From Parasitella parasitica NRRL 2501 (Eukaryota > Fungi > Mucoromycota): 64,000 bases of DNA. Each line of letters opens with the position of its first letter. Position 1 is the first letter of the stretch. Shown piece by piece: positions 26,288 through 62,901 of this stretch. The notes under the pieces were generated by a model that saw only the letters and a program-made list of their open reading frames with translations, was not told where the DNA came from and did no database searches. The position numbers and the translations under genes are program-made. Location of the stretch: the NCBI GenBank assembly GCA_025201805.1, contig MU619287.1, forward strand, positions 60,541 to 124,540. Direction: 5' to 3'.

Positions 26288-26752
26288 NNNNNNNNNNNNN
26301 NNNNNNNNNNNNNNNNNNNNNNNNNNNNNNNNNNNNNNNNNNNNNNNNNNNNNNNNNNNNNNNNNNNNNNNNNNNNNNNNNNNNNNNNNNNNNNNNNNNN
26401 NNNNNNNNNNNNNNNNNNNNNNNNNNNNNNNNNNNNNNNNNNNNNNNNNNNNNNNNNNNNNNNNNNNNNNNNNNNNNNNNNNNNNNNNNNNNNNNNNNNN
26501 NNNNNNNNNNNNNNNNNNNNNNNNNNNNNNNNNNNNNNNNNNNNNNNNNNNNNNNNNNNNNNNNNNNNNNNNNNNNNNNNNNNNNNNNNNNNNNNNNNNN
26601 NNNNNNNNNNNNNNNNNNNNNNNNNNNNNNNNNNNNNNNNNNNNNNNNNNNNNNNNNNNNNNNNNNNNNNNNNNNNNNNNNNNNNNNNNNNNNNNNNNNN
26701 NNNNNNNNNNNNNNNNNNNNNNNNNNNNNNNNNNNNNNNNNNNNNNNNNNNN
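26288..26752. other. Assembly gap (N run)
   Basis: Run of N preceded by poly-G. Confidence 1.
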
Positions 26753-26810: not shown

Positions 26811-29215
26811 CTACCATTGTTCCATCATGTGCTCAATGTCTCGAAGATGAAAGTATGTTTTAGCAAATTCCGAACAGCTGACAGAAACATCCCATTGCAA
26901 GTAAGTCAAAAAGACTCGTTCGATATTGTTGCTACATAGAGAATCCGATTAAGTATGTTTTTTTTATCGCATACAACCAAAATCTTCTTACATCACATCC
27001 AAGCTTAATTCGGGGAAAATCATGGCAAAATCAGCATTGAAAATAGCGCAATCGTCCCATACTTTTACTGCAGTTAACAAAGCGGCCATAATGATCATTC
27101 GCCAGCTAAAGTCCCAGAGTTTTTGCTTTGACAGCTCCAGCATACGCTTAACATAAATAAAAGTAATGATTGCATGCTCTGCATTCAGCTATCAGAACGT
27201 TTACTTTCAATAAATAGAGATGTTCCGAGTGCATCAACGCCTTACCTCACCACAGTCAAACACATACGCCAGTTGATCATACACATCGTTCCACTCAGTC
27301 AGAGGCTCATTCAGATCATAGCAATTGGTATCTTCCATGTTGGATTCATTTTCGTCAAAAATAACATTGCAATCAAACTCATTCAAGCTATGGTTTCGTT
27401 TGATGATACTGTAAAATGCCCATGATACACTAGAGGCAGTACTAGTTTAGAGTAATTCATAGATGGCTCAAAATATGCTTACCTTTTCAGTGTATTTTCT
27501 ACTTTATCTCGGCTTTTTTGTGCTTCGTGGAATGATTGCTGCCACTGAATGTCATAGTCTTTGATATTAGAGTAAACTGATGTTGATTTCTTGTATGTCT
27601 TGATGTCCTCAATATCCAAATGTAGCTTCTTATTGATGGGCCTTGGAATGCTACTACGCTGGGTTGGCAGCTGCTTTCCGACACACACATATGGAATGCT
27701 GTCTTGCAAACTGCTCATGTTTCCTTCAGTTCGACTTGCACGCACAACAGCAGCAGTAGCAGCAGCAGCAGCAGTGCCCCTCAGACCATCATCCAATGAA
27801 GGCGACCAAGCCCCATGCTTGTAATCAAGAAATGCGCACGCCTGTTTCGAGACTCGTTTCGATAAAAGATCCTCCTCCTTTTTTCCTTCTTGAGCCGCAA
27901 AATAGTCTTGATATTCTTGTGATCTCTCCCAAATGTCATCCAGTAATTTGTCAAACTGCTGCGATTGTGTTGAATCCCCATCCCAATAAGATGAATAATC
28001 CACTTTGCGGTTAAAGCTGCTGTGCGACGGGATAAATTGGACATCACTGATGTCTGGAGAGTTGGAGCCATGTGAAACAGTATCCTTGAAAGTTGCGTCC
28101 TCTTTGCTTTGTACAGCCAGGTCCAAAGGCGATTTCTGCTCAATATCTTTAATGCTCCCTAGCTTTTCCTCTTCTGATGTTGCTGATGTTAACGATGAGA
28201 ATGAGCGGCATGCTGTCTATCCATTAAAGTAAGCGAGAGTCTTTTGTGAGGCAGAATAAATCTAACAATGTTAAGTTACCTTTTCGCTAGGCGGTGTAAA
28301 GGATGATGTTTGCTCTTTACTCAGAGATAGATGATGCTGAACAGAGAACGTCTTTCTGAGTTGGCTTATCGACGTCTTTTTTTTGAAGGCTTTCTTCATA
28401 GAGTTGCTCAGCTGGATGAATATAGTCGAAATACTGCGTCCTATTGACCTACTGTCTCTGGAAGCAATAGTCGTAATCACACTGTGGCTATGGTTGTCGA
28501 GGGGCAATGTATTGGAACGTACATTCTCAGCAGCAGCAGCAGCAGTAGCAGCAGCGGGGGCAGGTGAGGATGAATTAGTTTCTATTTGATTTTGGCCTTC
28601 AAAGAACGTGGATGTCAAGGGTGTCAAAGACTCCTCGATCAATGATAGTGTACTGCTATCTGGTATTAAAGGTGGGGTATCTAAAAGGTCAATCATACTT
28701 TTGAAGGACACGGGTAGCTGTGAGAATGGCTGTTTGGAAGTGGCTACTGCGTCCGCCACATTATCGTTTATTGGTGTATATAAGGATTCATCATCTTCTT
28801 TACTGGAAAGAGTCGATCTTGAAGAATTTGCCAACAAAAGGGGAGGCTGGTGATTCTCCTCGATTTTATCGGAAATTTCAGTCGCTGGCATAGGCGTAAC
28901 TACAGATTTTGGTTTCAATGAGAATGAGCGAGTGGCCCAAGAACGAAGCGTGGTTTTATTCGATTGATGTTGGAGCTTGTTTTCGTTATTATTGACGGCA
29001 ATACGAGATGAAATGATCCACGAGGAAATCATGTCCAGCATCAAGCGCTTGGCATGATCGGGCAGGATTTGACTTAGTGCTGAATCAAAGTCGGGCACAG
29101 CATTTTCAAAAGTCAGGAGCATATCATGAGGGATTACGGGGATTGCACTGGTATTTGTACGATGTTGCTGTTGTTCGTTTATTGCCGAACTTGTTTTTGA
29201 ACGAGTCAAAAACAT
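26811..29215 (-). CDS. Cyclin Y-like protein with long disordered N-terminus (multi-exon)
   Basis: Spliced C-terminal cyclin box LNAEHAIITFIYVKRML..SWRMIIMAALLTAVKVWDDCAIFNADF..DV|NNIERVFLTYLQWDVSV..FAKTYFHLR, matching the cyclin Y type. Confidence 0.8.
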
Positions 29216-29330: not shown

Positions 29331-30710
29331 TCAAAGATATACATAGCGAGGTTTCTTTTGATTTTCTTCATCGTTGTTATTGCTCTTATTAGCATTGCTA
29401 AGGGCCTCAAAAGAACGTTTCTGTAAAGCCAAAAGTAAGTCAGTAGCAAATCAACACCACGCCTTGCCAGCAATACAATCTCAATACCTTGGCATGCTCC
29501 TCTTCCTTTGTTAATGACTTGATGCCAATGCCCATTTTGTCCAGTGCTTCTCTTGAAAGTACCGTCCCTACGATACCCGGCAGTGTTTTTCGTCAGCGAC
29601 TAGACGCATGTAAAACACATCATCGTACTTACTCGGGGAGTCTTCCTTGATTCCTTTGACTTTTCGGATCATTTCAGCACCGGGATCTCTTCGACCTTTT
29701 AAAAATTCCCTATAAATTCTGCATGTCAAAGGGATTTTGAATCGCATATAGGAAATTTTAAATACTACGTTAATTCTTCTTTTTCAGCTGCTGTGGGTTC
29801 TCGCTTTGGTGCCTGCGGCTTTTTGATTAAACTGCCATCTACAGCCACAAGGCCTCTTCCTTTGAGATAATACGCTTCCTTGTCTTTGCTAGGTCTCTTT
29901 GCAGAAAACAGCTTTGCAGTTGGATCCGCTCTCCTTTCTCGCTTGGACTCGTACAGAATGGAGCCATCAGATTGTCGTTTCTGAGTCGCCCAGCGAATAT
30001 CGAAACCACTGTCTCTGCAAAATTGTTATCAGTGGTGATTTTGCATCCTTTCTTTTTATATCCGCAGTGCTGTTAAATACTAACCCTCCTGCCAACTCCA
30101 TTCGGCCATTTTTTGAATAATTGCAAACCCTTTCTAAATGTTTATCGCAGTAATCACCAGAGCGACTTGGTTATTTTAAATCATGTCAATTCCTGCATTC
30201 TACTAGCCTGCATATTTACAGCTTACACGTCAGTCCATTCTGTGCATTGGACATCTTTTCTGATAAAGCTGCTGCACTGAGCTAGATCCAAGCTTTGGCC
30301 TATAACCCAAAATTGGTTCAAGCGATCAACGTGCAAACCAATAGAGTGGTGTGTTTCTGTGGGCTTGAGCAAAATTGGCCTCTTGATCGCAACGACTGAA
30401 CCCATGCCGATTGCAGCCTCATTTTTAGCATACGCATTTCCAGTGATGTACAGGTTGGAATATGACCCTCGCATATCTGTGATCCGAGTAACGCAGAAGT
30501 CTGACTGGGGAAAGCATTTGTCAATGACACCCACTGTTCCCCAGTCTGACGACGGCTTCACTCCCACACTGATTGAAAAGAACTGTCTTGTTCGACTCTC
30601 GACATTCCGGATAGCCACATATTCTATATTTCGTAAGCCTGTATTGCATTTTGCTTCCGATACAAGACGCCGTCTGTTATTCGTTTGAAAATTACAGGTT
30701 AGCAATTTGT
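29331..30710 (-). CDS. MCM10: DNA replication factor MCM10 (5' end lies in the assembly gap)
   Basis: OB fold (DWGTVGVI, ITDM, GSVVAIKRP, VIGQSLDL) followed by CCCH zinc finger C..RKDVQC..WTD|..DYCDKH. Confidence 0.82.
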
Positions 30711-30738: not shown

Positions 30739-30983
30739 NNNNNNNNNNNNNNNNNNNNNNNNNNNNNNNNNNNNNNNNNNNNNNNNNNNNNNNNNNNNNN
30801 NNNNNNNNNNNNNNNNNNNNNNNNNNNNNNNNNNNNNNNNNNNNNNNNNNNNNNNNNNNNNNNNNNNNNNNNNNNNNNNNNNNNNNNNNNNNNNNNNNNN
30901 NNNNNNNNNNNNNNNNNNNNNNNNNNNNNNNNNNNNNNNNNNNNNNNNNNNNNNNNNNNNNNNNNNNNNNNNNNNNNNNNNNN
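30739..30983. other. Assembly gap (N run)
   Basis: Run of N flanked by poly-T. Confidence 1.
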
Positions 30984-31188: not shown

Positions 31189-31825
31189 TTAGGTAGGTTG
31201 TTCATTGCCAACTGTGCCATCTGGAGAGCAAGCTGCTGAACTAGCATCATTTGGCGAATCATGATCATTATCATTAGAAGAACCAGGGCAATTAGTTGGG
31301 TAAGCAGGGACATCGTTTGGTAAAGCAGCATTTGACGAAATTGACTCATCGTCTGGAAAGCTGTCGTTGGCTTGCATAACGGCTGGATCATCAGGCATAA
31401 TTGCAGGCCATAAATACGTATCTAGTGACAAACATGTTAAAAGGATTTTATGTCACGGAATAGCTGGTGCTTACCCATTGTCTCTGGTGCAATCAGATAC
31501 TTGATAATCAACGGTGTCATTCTGTTGGCATGCTATATGCGTTAATAAAGCGTTAATCACCCTCTTTGTCTCTTTGCAAAGAATTCTAGCATTTCTGTGC
31601 CTACCTCGAAATGTGCCTCTACCTCCTGCAGTTTCTCTCTTGTTTTTGGCAAATCAATCATGACCACTATATCCACAGCACTCAAGCAGAAGCTGATGTC
31701 TTGCAATTTCATATCCACAAGCACATATTGCTCAGTGCGACTTGCATTGTACTTTGCAACATTGTCTTTCAGATCTTGCAAAAATTTTAAATGGGCACTT
31801 TTAATCTATAACTATACTTGGTAGC

Positions 31826-31883
<58 letters not shown>

Positions 31884-33834
31884 TTTAGAAAAAAGAAAAA
31901 AAAATACCTTTTTCTTCATCATGGCTCCCAAAATGCCAAGAATAGTGGTATTGTCATAATAGGCTATGGCTATCTTGGGACGTTTGTACGTAAAAAAGAC
32001 GTGCTCGATATACTCCAGGATAGCATCTTTTTTCGCGTCATTTGTCAATCTAAGCTGTGATTTATCATGTCAGTTGACTACGTGTCATCCTAAACAATCG
32101 AAATGTATACTTGCCAAGTTGTGCTTTTTTACATAGTCATCGAAATCACATTCATCCGATTGCAACGCCATGAAATGTGTTTGAAATTCTCGTTTGATCT
32201 TTGGTTTAATGGTGACAATAATTTCATCTCGGAGTGTATGCGGATACTCGGATTTCATCTCGACGCTTCTCGGGCAGTACCAGATCTTTTTGTTCATGAA
32301 AAAGTCGAATTCCTCTACATTAGATCGGCCATTGACCATCCAGCCAAACACAGTGCTCTTGGGGTTGCAGTAACGTTGAGTGTACAGTTCCAAATCCTTG
32401 TGTAATTCTTGGTCGATGGTATTGATAATTGTGTACAAGTCAATGGGTAATGAATAGAGGGCCGTGTCGGATAATATAATTGCTCTGGGCGTCTTCTTCA
32501 TCAAGGAGCAGAGATTCCTTGGAAGATTTAGCTGTAAAAATAAGTTAGATCGCTGCCATAGTGCTGTTTACAGAACACGTACATCTTTTGATTTCAAATA
32601 ATGGCCAGCATCACATATCATCACGTTGAATCGTTGATCAGCAATCTTGGTAATGTTGTTGGATATCTTTTTATGGCTTGCAATGTAGAATTTCACGGGG
32701 CTTCTGTTGAGTATTTCATAGACATCGGCATCGGTGACCTCTTCCTTGATGTCCTCTTCCTCTGATGATCCTTCATCGCTGACATAGTCAGGGTTTTCCA
32801 ACCTCATCTTCATTTTTTTGGCATAGGGCTGTCGTACTCGAAGACTGGAGGCCTCCTTGTTCTTTGCAGGCTTTTTTGGCGCTGGTCTTTTTCTCTTCAT
32901 AACCACAGGGTTCTTTTTGAAGAGCTCTTTCAAGTTGCTATCCAAAATGCATACTTCCTCGTCTTCAAGATCAAGGAAATTCTGTATTTTTTCTTTCCAA
33001 GTGCTGCACAGGATCCCAGGACATGTCAACAGCACGGGCCCCTCATCCTTGTACACATTAGCAAGTGCCAGTGCTTGTTCCTTCATTCCAATTCCATTTT
33101 CATTTCCCATGAAAATACGACCCCTCCTTTCAATTCCCAACCGCACGCCCTCTTGCTGAAAGCGGTTTAATCGAGCTCGCATGGGTGATTCCACAAATTC
33201 GCACCATTTCAGCTCAATTTCACTCACTCTACTGGGGTCGTCTACCGGCTTGTCAGGATGCAGTAGGCTTATCAGAGACTTTGGAATGGGGTCGATTTCT
33301 ATGTGGATGTTTGGCAGATTTGTTGGCAGTGCTCTCATGGCATCGTTGTAAATCCGCATCGACGCTGGAATGGTCCACAGTTGCTTGTCTTTGTCCCATT
33401 GAACGCCCGCTATTTTCTTGATGAGAGGATCAATGGTCAAGTTCTTTTGCACTTTGATAGTGATGCAGTTTGCAGAGATGAGACTAAACACGACTTTTAC
33501 TGTTGTACGTGGCAGTGTGATTTCTTTGCTGGGAGTTCTGTAGTAGAAAGGCATAGATGCTGGACGGGAGATGCTTGCCAATGTGTTTGACGCTTCGTAA
33601 GCTTCTACTGGATGCCGGATGAAGGGCATCGCCGAATTGTCCCATTTGAAATAACGGCAGGTGCCTGTCGAGCACTATTGTTGATTAGAAACTACAACTT
33701 TAGAACGTTTGCAAACAAAACAAAAAAAAAAAAAAAAATTATACCTTCCAGTACCAACGACCTCTGTTTTCACCAGGTGTTTTTACTTCCAAGCAAAATG
33801 GGGGCAAGCCACAGCGACAATTCTCTTTAGGCAT
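31189..33834 (-). CDS. GRF-zinc-finger + HARP + SNF2-like (SMARCAL1/HARP-related) protein with degenerate ATPase motifs
   Basis: Exons 1-2: MPKENCRCGL..VKTPGENRGRWYWK|CSTGTCRYFKWD (zf-GRF). HARP-like LIKKIAGVQWDKDKQLWTIP. SNF2 lobe LNRFQQEGVRLGIERRGRIFM, ICDAGHYLK, LPIDLYTII. C-terminal IIKYLIAPETM|DTYLWPAI resembles SMARCAL1. Confidence 0.8.
31828..31883. repeat. (CT/GA)n microsatellite within an intron of the SNF2-like gene
   Basis: Long CT dinucleotide run. Confidence 0.95.
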
Positions 33835-34232
33835 GCTTTGCTATTGTTTGTGCAAGGAAGATAAAGGAGCATTGGAAAAATGTCAAATCTACAGGCTTTT
33901 TTCAACACATGTTCAATAACCGACAATTCAAAGCTTTTTTTTTTGGGGGGTGGGGCGGCGGCGGGGGGCAATCAATCAGGGTGGAAAGGCTCACTAAATT
34001 ATGATTGGGCTCGAGTAAAAAACGCTGCACCTGGATCAACTGGTTATCAGCAAGTTTTATGCTTGGGAGTGGGGCTAATTTATCATGCAACCGACTCTAC
34101 TTCTTTATGGGATTTGATAGATCATTTACAGCAAGCAATTTTGATGTGACTTGAAAAAAGCAAAATGTTGTTATGGAAGCACCTTTTTAATCTTTGTTCA
34201 AATACTCTGGACAAAAACAGTTTCCATAATAG

Positions 34233-37200
34233 ATGTCTTTATCATCCATTTCAAGCTTTGGTGAGGGGGGAGGCTACGGTCCAACAAAGCAGCGCCGTCA
34301 GCTAACATTGCAGTTTTAGATGAGAACGCCTACTGCTATCTATTGTCAAATATAAGCCCTCAGACCGACAGAGACTCCTTGTGGAGGGTGTTTGGCGCTT
34401 TTGGCCCCATCGTACAGCTCGAAATGAAAACGGGGCCATTGAGCAAGGCAGCCATTATTTACAAGTAAGCACATGCATCACTGAAACCATCTGCTCCAAG
34501 CTGAATGCCTTTGAAGCTCGCAGCCTTCAGACCATCTGTTTACGCAAAAGATCTACATTGACAATCGCCTTATACCCATTGTTCCGCTTCGGATATCCGA
34601 GTACATTGCCGATTTCAGCAGACCTATACCAGTGAATACGCTTTCTCTTGGAGGCCTAGAGACGCCTCGCTTGTTTATCGAAGAATGGTCGACAGACCAA
34701 TACGTGACATTCGACCTCAACCTGAACGACCAGTACATTGACATATTCTTCCAGCATGTGGATGGCTACTACCGATTACGTATAGTGTACGACGACGACC
34801 ATCTGCGAAACAATGTTATACTGCAGCGACATGACAACAAAACATCGCTTACCTTGAGCGGCAAATACCCAGCGTATTTCTGGAAGTCAAGGATCCCAAT
34901 GGAGACGCTTGGCGACACATACTACATGAGAGAGTGGGAGCGAGTGACGGAAATCCCACTGGATGGGTTTGCGCAAGACATGGTGCGCCAAAAGGCAGCG
35001 ACAAGCAGTGGCAGTGCGGAAGGCAAAGGTCCCATCCTACCCGGTGGGCAGTATCCAGAGCATCACATGAAGCTTAGCATGTGGACCGTATACCGCCTGG
35101 AGTTTGACATCCCACTGAGCAACAAAAGGAATCCAGCATCGCTCTCGCCCAATAATTTGACGCACGAGTCGCTGGAACACAGGCTAAATCTGGCTATTGG
35201 CCAGCATCGACAGCCCGCCATGGAGCAGATCCACGTCAGATCGCCAACCAAGACCATTGACTTTGAGAGACAAATCTCAGGTATGTCCTTTGAGGTACGT
35301 TATATGATGGAGCACGCTTTCCGTCTCAAGATACTGCGAGAGTACAATGTGGACGGCGACTTTTTTCAAAAGATGCGAGATTTGCCGCCACAGGTAGCCT
35401 GTGTCTTTTTGACCCTGCTGTCGGCTCCCCAACAGCGTGTATACCATCCCGACACGGTAATCCACCACATCTACAGACTGTGCAAGGAGCAGATTGGCTT
35501 TCAGCTGTCTGTGCCCGAAGATCATGCAATGATGAGACGTGTGCTAGTGACGCCGACCTCGGTGTATCCATTGCAGCCCACTGTGGAGCCCATGAACAAC
35601 CTGCGGTATCACTTCAAGGAGTATGCAGACCGGTTTCTTTTTGTTCAGTTTACAGACGAAGACCTGAACCCTGTAGCGCCTCTGGACGACGGTGAGGATG
35701 ACACGTCTCAGAATGCAGCGTTACTTGATCGCATATACGCCATCTTGCGTCGCGGGCTGAGCGTTGCAGGAAGAGACTTTGAGTTCTTGAGCACATCGAT
35801 CCAGGACCTAAGAGTGCATGGATGCTGGTTCTTTGCACCGACAAAGCAGATAAACAGAAACCACATCATGGCCTGGCTGGGCGATTTTTCCGAAATAAAG
35901 AATATATCAACATTCATCAACTGCTCTGGACAGGTATACACAGGTTCTTTCACGGTAGCAGGCGCTCCCCATTAACCAACACGACGCTTTTTGTATAGTC
36001 TTTGTCGCCTCGATTAATGAATCTAAAGATCGACGCAGCTGATATCGAACAAGTAGAAGATCATGTCCACAACGGCCATGTCTTTACCACTGACTGCGGA
36101 AAGATGTCGGCCCAAATTGCAAGAGAGATAGCCAAGCACCTGGACATTGCATACACGCCCTCCGTGATCAAGTTCAACCTTAACGGTGCCCGGGGTATCC
36201 TCATGTTGTCCAACTTTCTGAGCAAGCGTAGGATACAACTGAGGTCAAGTCAAATCCGGTTCGAGAGTACGCAGCTCTGGTTGGAAGTGGTCAAATACGC
36301 AAAGCCCAACAAACTATATCTGAACGAACGCTCCATAACGCTGCTGTCGTCGCTGGGTGTCAACAATTATATCTTTCAAGAACTGCTCGAGGAAAACTTG
36401 GACTGTTGCGAAAAGTACCCCAACATTGACATGATGGACGTCCATTACTCCAATAGGCGCATGGACCATTTTAGACAGATCCTCGACTGCAAGTTTCAAG
36501 ACAAGCACGACCCGTTCATCACCAATTTAGCAGCTAGCTACCAAAACCATGTTCTTGGCTATCTTCGGGAGGGCAAGCTGTATATCCATCAAGGCGTCAG
36601 AGTGTTTGCCATTATGGACGAGACGGGGGTGCTGCAGCCTGGCGAGATATTTTTGCAAATCACAGACCCCTCTGGCTTGGCTGCCAATAGAAAAGTCATC
36701 GAGGGCCCCTGTGTCGTGTACAGAGAGTCATCGTGCTTTCCAGGCGATGTTCGTGTCATGGCTGCCATCAACTACCCGCAGCTTCGACATTACACCAATG
36801 TGTTGATATTCTCAGCAACAGATAAATACGATCTTCCGAGCATTTGTTCCAATGACGACCCAGACGAGGATAACTTTCAGTAAGTCTTTAGCAACGCTCT
36901 ATATTTGCAGCATGTTCACTGTTTACTGTTCACTGTTCACTCATCCCGTAGTATTACCTGGGATACTCGGCTACTGCCAGAAAAGCGCAGCGAGTACGCG
37001 AGAATCTATCAAACCGCAATGACGCCTCTGCAGTCAAAGAGAATTTCCTTCCGGGAGGCTGCCAAGTTTTTCACGACGTATATTTCCAAAGATAAATCCA
37101 GAAAGCTGCATGAAGCATTTATTGCAATAGCAGACCGACATAAAGACGGCGTGTTTAATGGTGATTGTATCTATCTCGCCCAGCAGATCTCAAGGGCATT

Positions 37201-38195
37201 AGGTAGTATCGGGGACATATAAACATGGAGTCGGTTTTATCTAACCTTTCAACCCCCCGATAGACTTTGCTAAAACTGGCATGTATGCTACCGTGAACAG
37301 CGATCTTGCGCACTATCCATATCCTGACTTTATGAAACAGCGACCTCTGAAAACATACAGCTCGACCAAGGCACTGGGCATCCTTTTCCGCGCTACTAAA
37401 ACCATGTATGACCGGCCACTTTCCAACACGCACTGTGCCTACGACACTCGGCTGTACGTACAAGACATGTACAAGTATATCGTTGAAGCGCGAAGAGCAA
37501 AAGCGAGGTACGACCACAGTTTGCGCCTCTTGCTCGGCCAATACTCTGTCAAGACTGAAGTCGAGTTCCTATCTGGCCATATCGTCGACTGGCCAAAGTA
37601 CCTTAACGAGCAGTACCGTCCTTTATTCCTGCAGCAAATCAAGGCCGCCTGCGTTCGCTTTAGAAAACACTGGAAGCAGATATTCGATGCACAATGGACG
37701 ACGGCCAGCCCTAGCAGCAATAATCAGGACCAGTCTGCGCAGATCGAAGCAAAGGCAGCAGCCTGGTATTACGTGACCTACCATCCCTCAGAGTACAAGA
37801 GCGCTATCATTTATAACAACACGCTACAGAGATACATGAGCTTCCCGTGGGTGGTGGAAAAGTATCTCATCTATATTGCTCACAAAAACGACACACGGCC
37901 AGATAGGCCCGAGTACAGCCAACCTATTCCTCCTCGCAAGATCCAAGAGCATGCAAAGCTGCATATGGGCCCTGAAACTGAAATCTATCTGGCCGAGTCA
38001 GATGAAGACGACGAATCCGACGAAGAAGAGGAGGGCGGCAGCAGTGAGGATGATGAAAAGACTGGAAGCAATCAGCACTCTGCAAGCTCGCGTGGCCTGA
38101 ATTTGTCTCGCCCTCCGCCCGCCCGCCATGAAGAAGCGGACCAAGTTCCTGTATCAAGTGTAGTAAAACTTGCAGATCTACTAGACTTGAAGTAA
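34233..38195 (+). CDS. Cellular RNA-dependent RNA polymerase (RNAi RdRP family) with N-terminal RRM-like region and atypical catalytic loop
   Basis: RdRP motifs RVLVTPT, ADRFLFVQFTDE, RDFEFL, GCWFFA, IMDETGVLQPGEIF, FPGDVR, CSNDDPDEDNF|HITWD, RAL|DFAKTG, YPDFM, AAAWYYVTY, SFPW; RRM-like exon 2 (LLSNISPQTDRDSLWRVFGAFGPIV). The 5' exon structure is approximate. Confidence 0.9.
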
Positions 38196-38869
38196 TAAAT
38201 CGTGCTTTTTTTTTTTGCAAGAGTTGAAAAGTTGAGCATCACCATTTAAAAAGAGTAATATCAAGGAACATTAGATGTTTACCTGCCGTCTAAAACGTGA
38301 CAAACGATTGCCCTGTGGTCAAAGCAGTACACTGACATGATTTCGTAGCCTTTGGCAGCATTTTATTTTTTTCGTCAAAATTTGTGATTTTTTCATGAGG
38401 GGGTATAAGAAAAAAAAATGGGATTTTCACAAAACGTGGTTTTTAAGCTGAAAAACGAAACATTTTACTATAGTATATATAGACCAAAATAAAGCCCCAA
38501 GATGTCCTCTTTTATTTGGTTTCTTTGTTTTTTTAGTCTACATTGTGCATTTTTGATTTATCCACAAAAAACGTATTTTTTGGTTTTTTGACAATTTCAG
38601 CATGTTCCACTTTGAATTTTAAACTGAAAAAAATAGAGATTTGTAGTTTGTGTCAAGACTCATATAAAACATTAGCACTACAAGTATAAATTATATGTGG
38701 GGCGGTGAGATAAAATGCTTTAAGTGTGATTAATTTTTACTTTTGGAAAAAAAAAGCCCAAAATCGGCATCATCCAGTACGAACAATACTATTTAAAACG
38801 CCGCAATTCATTCTGGTGCATTTAACATTTCAGAATTTTTTTTGTTTGCTGTTGTTTTATACATTTGCC

Positions 38870-41060
38870 ATGTCTCAATCTTCTGAAGAAAGTGAGGAAA
38901 ATAAGCAAGGATTCTCCATTGATGAGCACACCTATTATAAATCGAATGCAGCGTTAAACGGTTGGGTTATTCATACGTGCTGGCCACCAGCTGCAGAGCT
39001 GATGCCATTGATTGGCAAAAGAATAACAGACGTACTGCCAGCGTCCTTTGATAATGGAAAGAAGCGCAGAGCCAAAGACAGCGAATCACTAGCATTACCG
39101 CTCGTGGCTGATGACAGAGGATCTGTGAATGCTACTCATCAGCCTCTCGCTGCAAAGAGATTGCGCACATCTCGTTTGCAAGAGTTGAATGTGGTGCAAC
39201 CAAATGGACAGGTACGCCAGCACACACATGCTCTTCCAGAATCTTGTATAAAAAGTCCTTTACAACAGCGCTCACAGGCTGGAATTGATAAGCTGCAGCG
39301 CACTCCAATGCCTACAACTGATGCAACACAACATATGTCAAGACCTGTAGCAAGTATACAAACCCATCAGAGCCAGGCTTCACAAAGCCGTCGCCGGGTA
39401 CTGCCCGAGAGAGGTGTTATTACGCAAGAATCGGTGAGAATCAGGAATTTCAAACCAACGTCTACATCTACAGCAGCCTCTACGTCGACATCGACACATC
39501 ATCAGAAGAATGCAGCAACAAAACGTATACATCGAGCCCAAACTCCATCAGAGGAGGCTCCATTGAAATCAGTTGTGTACGATGCCGGTTTATTCGACAA
39601 CCTATCCAAGGAACAAAAAAAGATCCACAACTACATTGTTCATAAGCACGAGAGCGTATTTTTCACTGGATCAGCTGGCACAGGCAAATCTGTCTTACTG
39701 AAAACACTGATCAATTCGCTTCAGCATATACACGGGCGAGACACGGTTGCAATCACAGCGTCTACAGGCATTGCGGCGTGCAACATTGGAGGAGTTACGC
39801 TTCACAGCGAACTGGCAATTGGAAGAGGAGACAAAGAGCCAAGCGCATACATTGGCATGATTCGAAACAGCGAAAGAGTGCTGCAAAAAATCAACCGTTT
39901 AAAGGTGCTCGTCATCGACGAGATCTCCATGATTGATGGCCTTCTGTTTGACAAAATAGACCAGGTGTTGCGCACCGTCCGACTCAACCAGAGCAAGCCA
40001 TTTGGGGGGGTTCAGCTAGTTTTATGCGGAGATTTCTATCAGTTACCGCCGATTAGCAGAAGCAATCAAACGCTGCAGTATACATTTCAAGCTCAATGCT
40101 GGGATAGAGCCATCAGCAAATGCTTGGAGCTGAAAACTGTGTTTCGACAATCAGATCAACGTAAGATTTTTTCCAAGCCGAAATCGCATTACACGAGACG
40201 ACTAACTTGGGGCCCAATTCACCTACACAGACTTTGCAAGCATGTTGAATGAATTGAGAATAGGCAAAGTTTCAAGCACGACTGAAAGAGAGCTTCAAGG
40301 GCTACGACGAGCCCTTCCCATTATCAACCATATTGAACCGACGCAACTGTAAGTCCTCTCTCTTTTTTTTTTTTTTTTTTTTTTTGTAGTGGATAAATGG
40401 AACCACAGGAATAAAATGCAAAGTTTAGATATCCTCTCAGAAGAGAGCTGGACAAGGCAAATACAGAAAGACTAGATGCCTTACCCGGAGAGTCTCACAC
40501 CTACCTATCAATTGACACAGGCAACATGTATCTATACAAACACTGTATTGCACCAGAGGCAATCACACTAAAAGTAGATGCCCAAGTCATGCTAGTGAAA
40601 AACCTAACTCCCACACTTGTCAATGGATCCAGAGGCGTAGTTGTCAGATTTTCAAACGTCAATGGAGAGATGTTTCCCGTTGTCAGGTTTTCAAACAACT
40701 CAGAGAGGGTGATTACGAGGGATAATTTTACTTTTGAATCGCAAGGTAATGAACATTCACACACTAGCATTACAAGTGCGCAGCGCCTTATTTCCAACAT
40801 TTGCAGGCGTCCAAAAAGCTCAGAGAATCCAAATCCCATTGGTCTTGGCTTGGGCGCTCTCCATCCATAAATCGCAAGGCCAAACAATCGAGTATCTCAA
40901 GGTTGATTTACGGAGCGTGTTTGACTATGGACAAGCCTATGTTGCGCTATCGCGAGCCACATCCATGGACAATCTGCAGGTTTTGAATTTCTCAAGAGAC
41001 ATTGTCAAGACGCATCCAAAAGTAGCCGAATTCTACCGAAAGCATTTTCACCATATTTAG
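38870..41060 (+). CDS. PIF1: PIF1/RRM3-family 5'-3' DNA helicase (3 introns)
   Basis: [93 protein letters not shown]. Confidence 0.93.
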
Positions 41061-62866: not shown

Positions 62867-62901
62867 NNNNNNNNNNNNNNNNNNNNNNNNNNNNNNNNNN
62901 N
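62867..62901. other. Assembly gap (N run)
   Basis: Short N run after C/T homopolymers. Confidence 1.

Follow-up and report, generated by a model that had tools for sequence, protein, structure and literature searches.

What do the two divergent genes at positions 31189-38195 of the Parasitella parasitica NRRL 2501 window encode, are their products still enzymes, and do they work together? The window is the whole 64,000-nt stretch of DNA that was analysed, and all positions count along it. The gene on the minus strand (gene 1) combines a GRF zinc finger, a HARP domain and an SNF2 core, and the gene on the plus strand (gene 2) encodes an RNA-dependent RNA polymerase (RdRP). Judged from its sequence, gene 1 encodes a pseudo-ATPase, family-wide and so far undescribed, that descends from a fork remodeller of SMARCAL1 type. 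The locus as a whole is probably best explained as an rdrp3 locus with a conserved pseudo-ATPase neighbour, in which the linkage is ancestral and both products would have non-catalytic roles. The locus is fungal and its introns are short. DNA reading and domain matches bore out the coordinates, the divergent orientation and the MCM10 and PIF1 flanks given by the first-pass annotation of this DNA, and the long, intact and spliceable frames that it described are open over all exons in both genes (Table 1). Exons were searched one at a time, and the database orthologues P0015, P0291 and P0195 represented whole proteins.

As shown in Table 1, the GRF finger of gene 1 is encoded at the N-terminus, and its signature CxC...GRxF/Y...C...C.F.W was read directly across intron 1. 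Pfam PF06839 (GRF) matched exon 1 alone with an E-value of 0.014 and was above cut-off in the orthologues P0015 and P0008-P0010. A HARP domain upstream of the ATPase core was found by structural modelling together with profile-profile comparison. When the HARP-type domain was modelled alone, the best VIA matches of the model were the T4 UvsW N-domain (Z 6.0, 2.4 Å over 64 residues) and the XPB damage-recognition domain (Z 5.8), and the SMARCAL1 HARP crystal structure 4o66 was at Foldseek rank 5. The profile of this domain matched the Pfam-positive HARP segments of the nearest intact relatives in hhalign (97.2%, E 4.5e-11, 80 columns). The published description of the HARP fold corresponds to the gene 1 domain model, and UvsW is stated to carry a HARP domain (PMC4666394). 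Pfam HARP gave no match on the window, on the orthologues or in the whole genome, and a second copy of the gene 1 diagnostic exon was not found in the same genome, so the dead gene appears to be the sole SMARCAL1-type gene left.

The N-lobe of gene 1 has the fold of SNF2 RecA lobe 1, with AlphaFold2 (AF2) model VIA Z values of 9-10.3 to SRCAP, INO80, ISWI and CSB. Pfam SNF2-rel_dom was below cut-off in the window gene and above cut-off in the orthologues. Helicase_C (PF00271) was not detected by Pfam in the orthologue P0015 or in the window exons; the C-terminal lobe can still be aligned to intact relatives despite this. The PDB holds no SMARCAL1 ATPase structure, sequence searches there gave only CHD1L, Fft3 and Rad26, and the ESM Atlas returned generic SNF2 clusters only.

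The SNF2 active site had been described as altered, and this was confirmed at motifs I, II, III and VI, which are replaced by GIGMK, DAGH, SDTA and QEVEAHFE, respectively. The Walker B glutamate is gone in all 11 core-Mucorales sequences, which read D[AG][GS][HN] or TDSH, and none of the 11 has the Walker A Lys-Thr; in other alignments, Rhizopus and Sporodiniella retain the Lys and not the Thr. These alignments showed gene 1 to be a conserved, predicted pseudo-ATPase of SMARCAL1 type across core Mucorales. Like the SMARCAL1/HARP annealing helicase, gene 1 has a HARP domain directly preceding the SNF2 core; its nearest intact relatives are above the Pfam HARP cut-off, and one Rhizopus member of the family was deposited as SMARCAL1. 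In contrast to SMARCAL1 and the ZRANB3-type fork remodellers, gene 1 has one HARP domain, an N-terminal GRF finger and no intact motif I, II, III or VI. With these ATPase motifs destroyed, its product cannot be an ATP-driven annealing helicase. The N-terminus of animal SMARCAL1 binds RPA, and it is this place that the GRF finger occupies in gene 1.

The Cokeromyces orthologue served as the query for an exhaustive survey of the family, and the hits were then examined by Pfam, by name and by alignment. Proteins of the order GRF-HARP-SNF2-Helicase_C with fully intact motifs were found in chytrids (Cladochytrium, Polychytrium), Paraphysoderma, Gigaspora, Jimgerdemannia and the ichthyosporean Chromosphaera and, within Mucorales, in Apophysomyces and Fennellomyces. 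These intact fungal and holozoan proteins have the same domain order as gene 1 and can be aligned to it over the full length, and the one in Apophysomyces also has an RdRP neighbour and the GH18/TLD flank; they differ from gene 1 in keeping GLGKT, DESH, SGTP and QAEDRAHRIG, and are themselves uncharacterised. Since the architecture is intact in fungi and Holozoa, the GRF finger is ancestral, which corrects the earlier view that it had been added to a SMARCAL1-like gene. Half-decayed forms, in which GKT is usually kept and motif III is lost, were found in Lichtheimia, Dichotomocladium, Phascolomyces, Radiomyces, Spinellus and Phycomyces. Motif VI is also lost in Radiomyces and Spinellus, and the other half-decayed gene models do not cover it. 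Dead motifs were found in Pilobolus, Rhizopus, Sporodiniella, Choanephora, Blakeslea, Cokeromyces, Mucor and Parasitella. The comparison showed an order of loss: the half-decayed lineages have parted with motifs III and VI first, and it is only in core Mucorales that Walker B and Walker A have disappeared as well. Active, half-decayed and dead forms in living lineages make up a rare natural series from DNA motor to pseudo-enzyme.

The first-pass annotation had treated gene 2 as an anonymous atypical RdRP. All of its large exons matched Pfam RdRP (PF05183), with exon-wise E-values of 4.9e-26, 2.7e-71 and 1.5e-08, and it aligns to the RDR2 and QDE-1 structures. In M. lusitanicus, the gene adjoining the gene 1 orthologue has a length of 3947 bp and a product of 1214 aa; rdrp3 of this species was reported with a coding region of 3947 bp, five introns and 1210 aa (Calo et al. 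2017, PMC5384783). In an LG+G4 quick tree of 44 rows, in which the window was represented by an exon, this exon fell within a clade of 14 with a support of 100 in the Shimodaira-Hasegawa-like approximate likelihood ratio test (SH-aLRT) and a stem branch of 0.92, apart from the RdRP2-type clade. The rdrp3 clade contains M. lusitanicus, Rhizopus, Cokeromyces, Choanephora, Mycotypha, Thamnidium and Pilobolus as well as the window, and the QDE-1-type paralogues are outside it. Because of synteny, the 3947-bp size, the five introns and the fully supported clade, gene 2 was shown, at the level of sequence, to be orthologous to Mucor lusitanicus rdrp3, known as a component of the non-canonical pathway for RNA interference (NCRIP). 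The Parasitella copy agrees with M. lusitanicus rdrp3 in lying beside the SNF2-like gene and MCM10, in length, in having five introns, in clade and in its DPDED loop; the difference is that the function was established in M. lusitanicus by genetics, and the Parasitella copy is known from its sequence. In M. lusitanicus, rdrp3 is needed for Dicer-independent NCRIP, represses epimutation and is not needed for the initiation or amplification of transgene silencing (PMC5384783).

This identification also means that the production of aberrant RNA by QDE-1 and QDE-3, with which the locus had been compared, is not the nearest model. The Neurospora QDE-1/QDE-3/RPA system resembles the locus in that an RdRP is placed near DNA replication and repair factors and a partner binding single-stranded DNA (ssDNA) is postulated. 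However, QDE-1 is an active polymerase with a DYDGD loop, and there is no RecQ at the Parasitella locus. The genome has three RdRP genes, and the other two read GGDLDGD and GGDYDGD at the metal-binding loop, the latter being the QDE-1-like paralogue, a different gene (L008).

The canonical D-b-D-G-D loop was not found in gene 2: the Gly is replaced by Glu, the preceding GG is replaced by ND, and the three Asp are retained, with codons at 36857, 36863 and 36869 and an intron starting 8 nt downstream. The claim of an altered RdRP active site therefore stood as far as the non-canonical loop NDDPDED is concerned, but all three catalytic Asp are present, so the term 'catalytically rewired' is not borne out for this RdRP. 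Across the rdrp3 clade, 10 of 16 loops keep all three Asp, the window included, and DPDED, DNDED and DVDED are among the loops seen. The others have lost one to three of them: DPAED in the metagenomic contig L004, APDDD in Mycotypha, DANEN in R. arrhizus, GTEKD in R. stolonifer, GPEKD in Sporodiniella and NIKGA in Pilobolus. The Asp-losing proteins remain full length. Only Pilobolus, the sole clade member in which all three Asp are missing, has Gly at the Gly position of the loop. By comparison, GGDLDGD was read in 82 of the 86 RdRP2-type hits with a locatable loop.

It is quite possible, if short of our preferred reading, that RdRP3 still works as a polymerase or nucleotidyl transferase, its metal loop having been rewired to the more acidic NDDxD[ED]D, and is not a pseudo-enzyme, the Asp losses being lineage-specific inactivations. 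The loops with three Asp, that of the window among them, agree with this. The loop flanks CSND and DNF-x-[IV]-x-WD are strongly conserved across the clade, indicating that the rdrp3 loop is under a different constraint and not under none. An extra Asp before the loop and Asp or Glu commonly in place of the Gly indicate that loop acidity is maintained. Published models also treat RdRP3 as a polymerase and assume that it makes complementary strands (PMC5384783). Against a working polymerase stand the full-length proteins that have lost Asp in the species listed above, the loss of the Gly everywhere but in Pilobolus, the long clade stem and the dispensability of rdrp3 for transgene silencing.

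A full-length RdRP with GG[KS]LGGD, in which two of the three Asp are lost, was also seen in Phycomycetaceae: GGKLGGD in Spinellus (L015 3908-4801), where it adjoins the half-decayed GRF-SNF2 gene, and GGSLGGD in Phycomyces blakesleeanus (P0193). This may be a second, independent pseudo-RdRP.

The divergent pair was found in seven lineages, from Apophysomyces to Mucor, so adjacency is not species-specific, and both families are present together in core Mucorales. The gap between the two genes is 398 bp in M. lusitanicus as in Parasitella, about 456 bp in Cokeromyces, about 1.4 kb in the Joint Genome Institute (JGI) contig L004, 1.1 kb in R. microsporus, 3.3 kb in Spinellus and 5.6-5.9 kb in Apophysomyces, where a 91-aa gene call lies between. 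Both partners are intact in Apophysomyces (RdRP GGDLDGD; SNF2 GLGKT/DESH). Because Apophysomyces still has both intact genes in divergent orientation, the comparison showed that the pairing would date from a time when both genes encoded intact enzymes. In the tree, the RdRPs linked to SNF2 genes in Apophysomyces and Phycomycetaceae group in a separate clade (99), the relation of which to rdrp3 and RdRP2 is a polytomy; forcing them together with rdrp3 cost 4.1 log-likelihood (lnL) units and was not rejected (approximately unbiased (AU) test, p 0.09). The order TLD-GH18-SNF2, RdRP-PIF1 favours their orthology with rdrp3.

In Choanephora/Blakeslea, Radiomyces, Fennellomyces and Pilobolus, which count as four or five lineages, the two genes are no longer adjacent, and Choanephora and Pilobolus retain both genes on different contigs. 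The flanks, GH18/TLD beside the SNF2 gene and PIF1 beside rdrp3, have been kept with much the same frequency as the pair itself, so inherited microsynteny and co-regulation account for the linkage equally well, and inherited microsynteny does so most simply. A conserved promoter element was looked for by pairwise alignment and shared 9-mers in seven intergenic regions, and only AT-rich chance words were found. M. lusitanicus lacks the G-rich tract of positions 33945-33968 in its own 398-bp intergenic region, so this tract is not a conserved element. The upstream region of about 400 bp with a tract, described in the first-pass annotation as shared, is therefore present in Parasitella at 398 bp with its tract, but neither the sequence nor the tract is conserved, and the gap is 1.1-5.6 kb elsewhere.

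Two observations were made at split or broken loci. In Choanephoraceae (L003 7543-9707, L005 6524-8644), the position upstream of the SNF2-like gene is held not by rdrp3 but by a gene of 560-600 aa on the same strand with a weak RNase_T (DEDD exonuclease) match. In L006 (1-3218), synteny with L004 ends 80 bp upstream of the SNF2 start, and AT-rich DNA (33% GC) with a retroelement-like fragment of an open reading frame (ORF) is found instead; the contig ends 3.3 kb beyond the break, the RdRP side is displaced or lost, and the contig is uninformative for pairing.

Under the explanation that we favour, the locus would have started from two intact enzyme genes that were already divergent neighbours in the ancestor. 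The SNF2 partner would then have lost its ATPase motifs, with selection still acting on the GRF finger, on the HARP domain and on many positions at the surface, and the RdRP loop would have changed from GGDLDGD to an acidic NDDxD[ED]D, with an Asp triad that is no longer reliably kept across species. The gene 1 product would bind ssDNA or fork-type junctions independently of ATP and would serve as a scaffold or decoy, not as a motor. RdRP3 would serve NCRIP at least partly by RNA binding or scaffolding, and polymerisation would not be obligatory. Several points weigh against this explanation. RdRP3 of the window retains three Asp and may still polymerise. The orthology of the linked RdRPs of Apophysomyces and Phycomycetaceae to rdrp3 is drawn from synteny, the tree leaving a polytomy. 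Annotated gene 1 orthologue models are mostly truncated (414-567 aa), so the states of the C-lobe are established for few species. The structural evidence for the predicted HARP domain of gene 1 is moderate (Z 6, Foldseek E 0.05-0.15).

The co-regulated module suggested by the first-pass annotation was considered here in the form of a shared promoter and joint action, in which the dead SMARCAL1-like protein would recognise ssDNA, forks or R-loops and recruit RdRP3, coupling replication stress or repeats to (non-canonical) RNA interference. We regard this module as rather doubtful, and that the gene 1 protein and RdRP3 would act in one pathway or complex is plausible but can likewise be put forward only tentatively. 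The divergent arrangement across Mucorales in seven lineages and the close start codons in Parasitella, Mucor and Cokeromyces (398-456 bp) would fit such a module. The decay of the two genes in parallel is suggestive as well, both being intact in Apophysomyces, partly decayed in Spinellus (SNF2 with GKT and without motifs III and VI; RdRP with GGKLGGD) and altered in core Mucorales. However, the parallel decay comes down to a small number of independent events on a single tree, the lineages named above have the pair split, with both genes kept in Choanephora and Pilobolus, and there is no conserved intergenic motif and the gap is wide in other lineages. The GH18/TLD and PIF1 neighbours are kept about as often, making the block syntenic as a whole.

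RdRPs elsewhere work with helicase-like partners: plant Pol IV-RDR2 with the CLSY SNF2 proteins, S. pombe Rdp1 with Hrr1, and Neurospora SAD-1 with SAD-3. The likeness lies in an RdRP associated with an SF2/SNF2-type partner that selects or presents templates, the Parasitella pair being known from the genes alone. These partners differ in that they are not of SMARCAL1 type and are not known to be encoded beside the RdRP. It is unlikely, in our estimate, that the two members of an ancient unit, a fork- or ssDNA-recognising motor of SMARCAL1 type and an RdRP, both became non-catalytic side by side as Mucorales evolved, and that the unit is now a non-enzymatic sensor complex marking nucleic-acid structures for NCRIP, with the dead SMARCAL1-like protein as a missing NCRIP component and RdRP3 as a pseudo-polymerase.

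The gene 1 model is collinear with the full-length Mucor velutinosus orthologue P0015 (743 aa, tblastn). Intron 3 (32055-32114) was assigned a GC-AG donor, GCAAGT at 32114, because no other splice yields the M. velutinosus junction HNL|L(R/K)LTND. Intron 4 (31907-31806) contains a long (GA)n microsatellite; in M. lusitanicus, (GA)n sits in the intergenic region instead. The 11 orthologues of gene 1 share 40-79% identity and 47 invariant alignment columns, and members of the family are still present in Mucoraceae, Rhizopodaceae, Choanephoraceae and Pilobolaceae. Against M. lusitanicus, the nonsynonymous divergence (dN) is 0.11-0.20 for both genes (0.13-0.20 for gene 1) and the synonymous divergence (dS) is saturated, so no numeric dN/dS can be given for half of the exons. 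Neutral evolution, which would have spoken against the first-pass proposal, was not seen, dN being far below the saturated dS, and the comparison showed purifying selection on both genes. The view that gene 1 has no function and is either a pseudogene in decay or a product of faulty annotation, as the destroyed ATPase motifs and the truncated public models might suggest, is close to refuted and was rejected on conservation, given the open 7-exon frame with proper splice sites and collinearity with the 743-aa orthologue, the invariant columns across 11 species, the low dN and the persistence in four Mucorales families.

RdRP3 is one of few genetically defined components of NCRIP, which governs epimutation, virulence-related gene expression and genome stability in Mucorales. 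In the literature searched, no paper linked NCRIP to an SNF2 or SMARCAL1 protein, none commented on the RdRP3 loop, and the NCRIP and rdrp3 papers did not mention loss of catalytic Asp in other species or a conserved neighbour. Since the Asp triad is dispensable in several species of the rdrp3 clade, a scaffolding role becomes a serious alternative to polymerisation. The ancient linkage names one concrete candidate partner gene for RdRP3, and the pairing turns a link between fork sensing and non-canonical RNA interference into a testable hypothesis.

Table 1. Features of the gene 1-rdrp3 locus of P. parasitica NRRL 2501, in window positions (pLDDT, predicted local distance difference test).
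Feature	Position	Strand	Details and basis
Gene 1, GRF-HARP-SNF2 (SMARCAL1-like), predicted pseudo-ATPase	31189..33834	-	745 codons, 7 exons; ATG 33834, stop 31189-31191
Gene 1 exons	33834-33745, 33674-32583, 32531-32115, 32054-31908, 31805-31605, 31532-31475, 31421-31189	-	read from DNA
GRF-type zinc finger, split by intron 1 (33744-33675)	33633..33834	-	CRCG...GRWYWK; CSTGTCRYFKWD
HARP-type substrate-recognition domain (predicted)	33249..33533	-	95 residues; five-stranded sheet and two helices; AF2 model, pLDDT 84
Walker A remnant GNENGIGMKEQ (canonical GDEMGLGKTIQ), lysine lost	33075..33107	-	CHD1L and family alignments
Walker B remnant DAGH (canonical DESH), glutamate lost	32601..32612	-	family alignments
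Motif III remnant SDTA (canonical SGTP)	32460..32471	-	family alignments
Motif VI remnant QEVEAHFE (canonical QAEDRAHRIG), arginines lost	31605..31628	-	family alignments
Intergenic region between both start codons	33835..34232	.	398 bp; G-rich tract at 33945-33968
Gene 2, orthologue of Mucor rdrp3	34233..38195	+	1219 codons, 6 exons/5 introns; ATG 34233, stop 38193-38195
Gene 2 exons	34233-34260, 34314-34464, 34517-35933, 35999-36879, 36952-37202, 37264-38195	+	read from DNA
N-terminal RRM-like segment	34316..34462	+	Pfam RRM_1, E 7e-4, 19.8 bits against cut-off 20.7
RdRP domain (PF05183), three introns within	35547..37394	+	Pfam
Metal-binding loop N-D-D-P-D-E-D (against G-G-D-L-D-G-D)	36851..36871	+	alignment to Arabidopsis RDR2 structures 7eu0/7roz; DNA reading
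PIF1 helicase gene (largest exon), downstream of rdrp3	38726..40252	+	E 2.7e-46
MCM10 (OB fold and primase zinc finger), downstream of gene 1	30223..30705	-	domain matches

Among the remaining features, RRM_1, marked as weak, was also recorded on the RdRP neighbour gene of Spinellus. PIF1 adjoins rdrp3 in Cokeromyces and Pilobolus too, and MCM10 adjoins the gene 1 orthologue in M. lusitanicus. Runs of N, which are assembly gaps, were found at 30739-30983, 26288-26752 and 62867-62901 of the window; the first of these separates MCM10 from the 3' end of gene 1, and their spacing in the assembly may therefore differ from the real one. Beyond MCM10, a 314-aa ORF at 28271-29215 on the minus strand gave merely a faint DUF7869 match.

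The protein P0291, deposited as Parasitella parasitica RdRP3, is 70-84% identical to the window exons, and the RdRP2-type protein P0166, also deposited as Parasitella parasitica, is 100% identical to the paralogue of the genome analysed here. From these identities, two assemblies named Parasitella parasitica look like different species or deep lineages. In Mucor flavus, the consecutive RdRP2-type genes P0175 and P0181 (MFLAVUS_006978 and _006979) lie on one contig as an apparent tandem duplication, and both read GGDLDGD.

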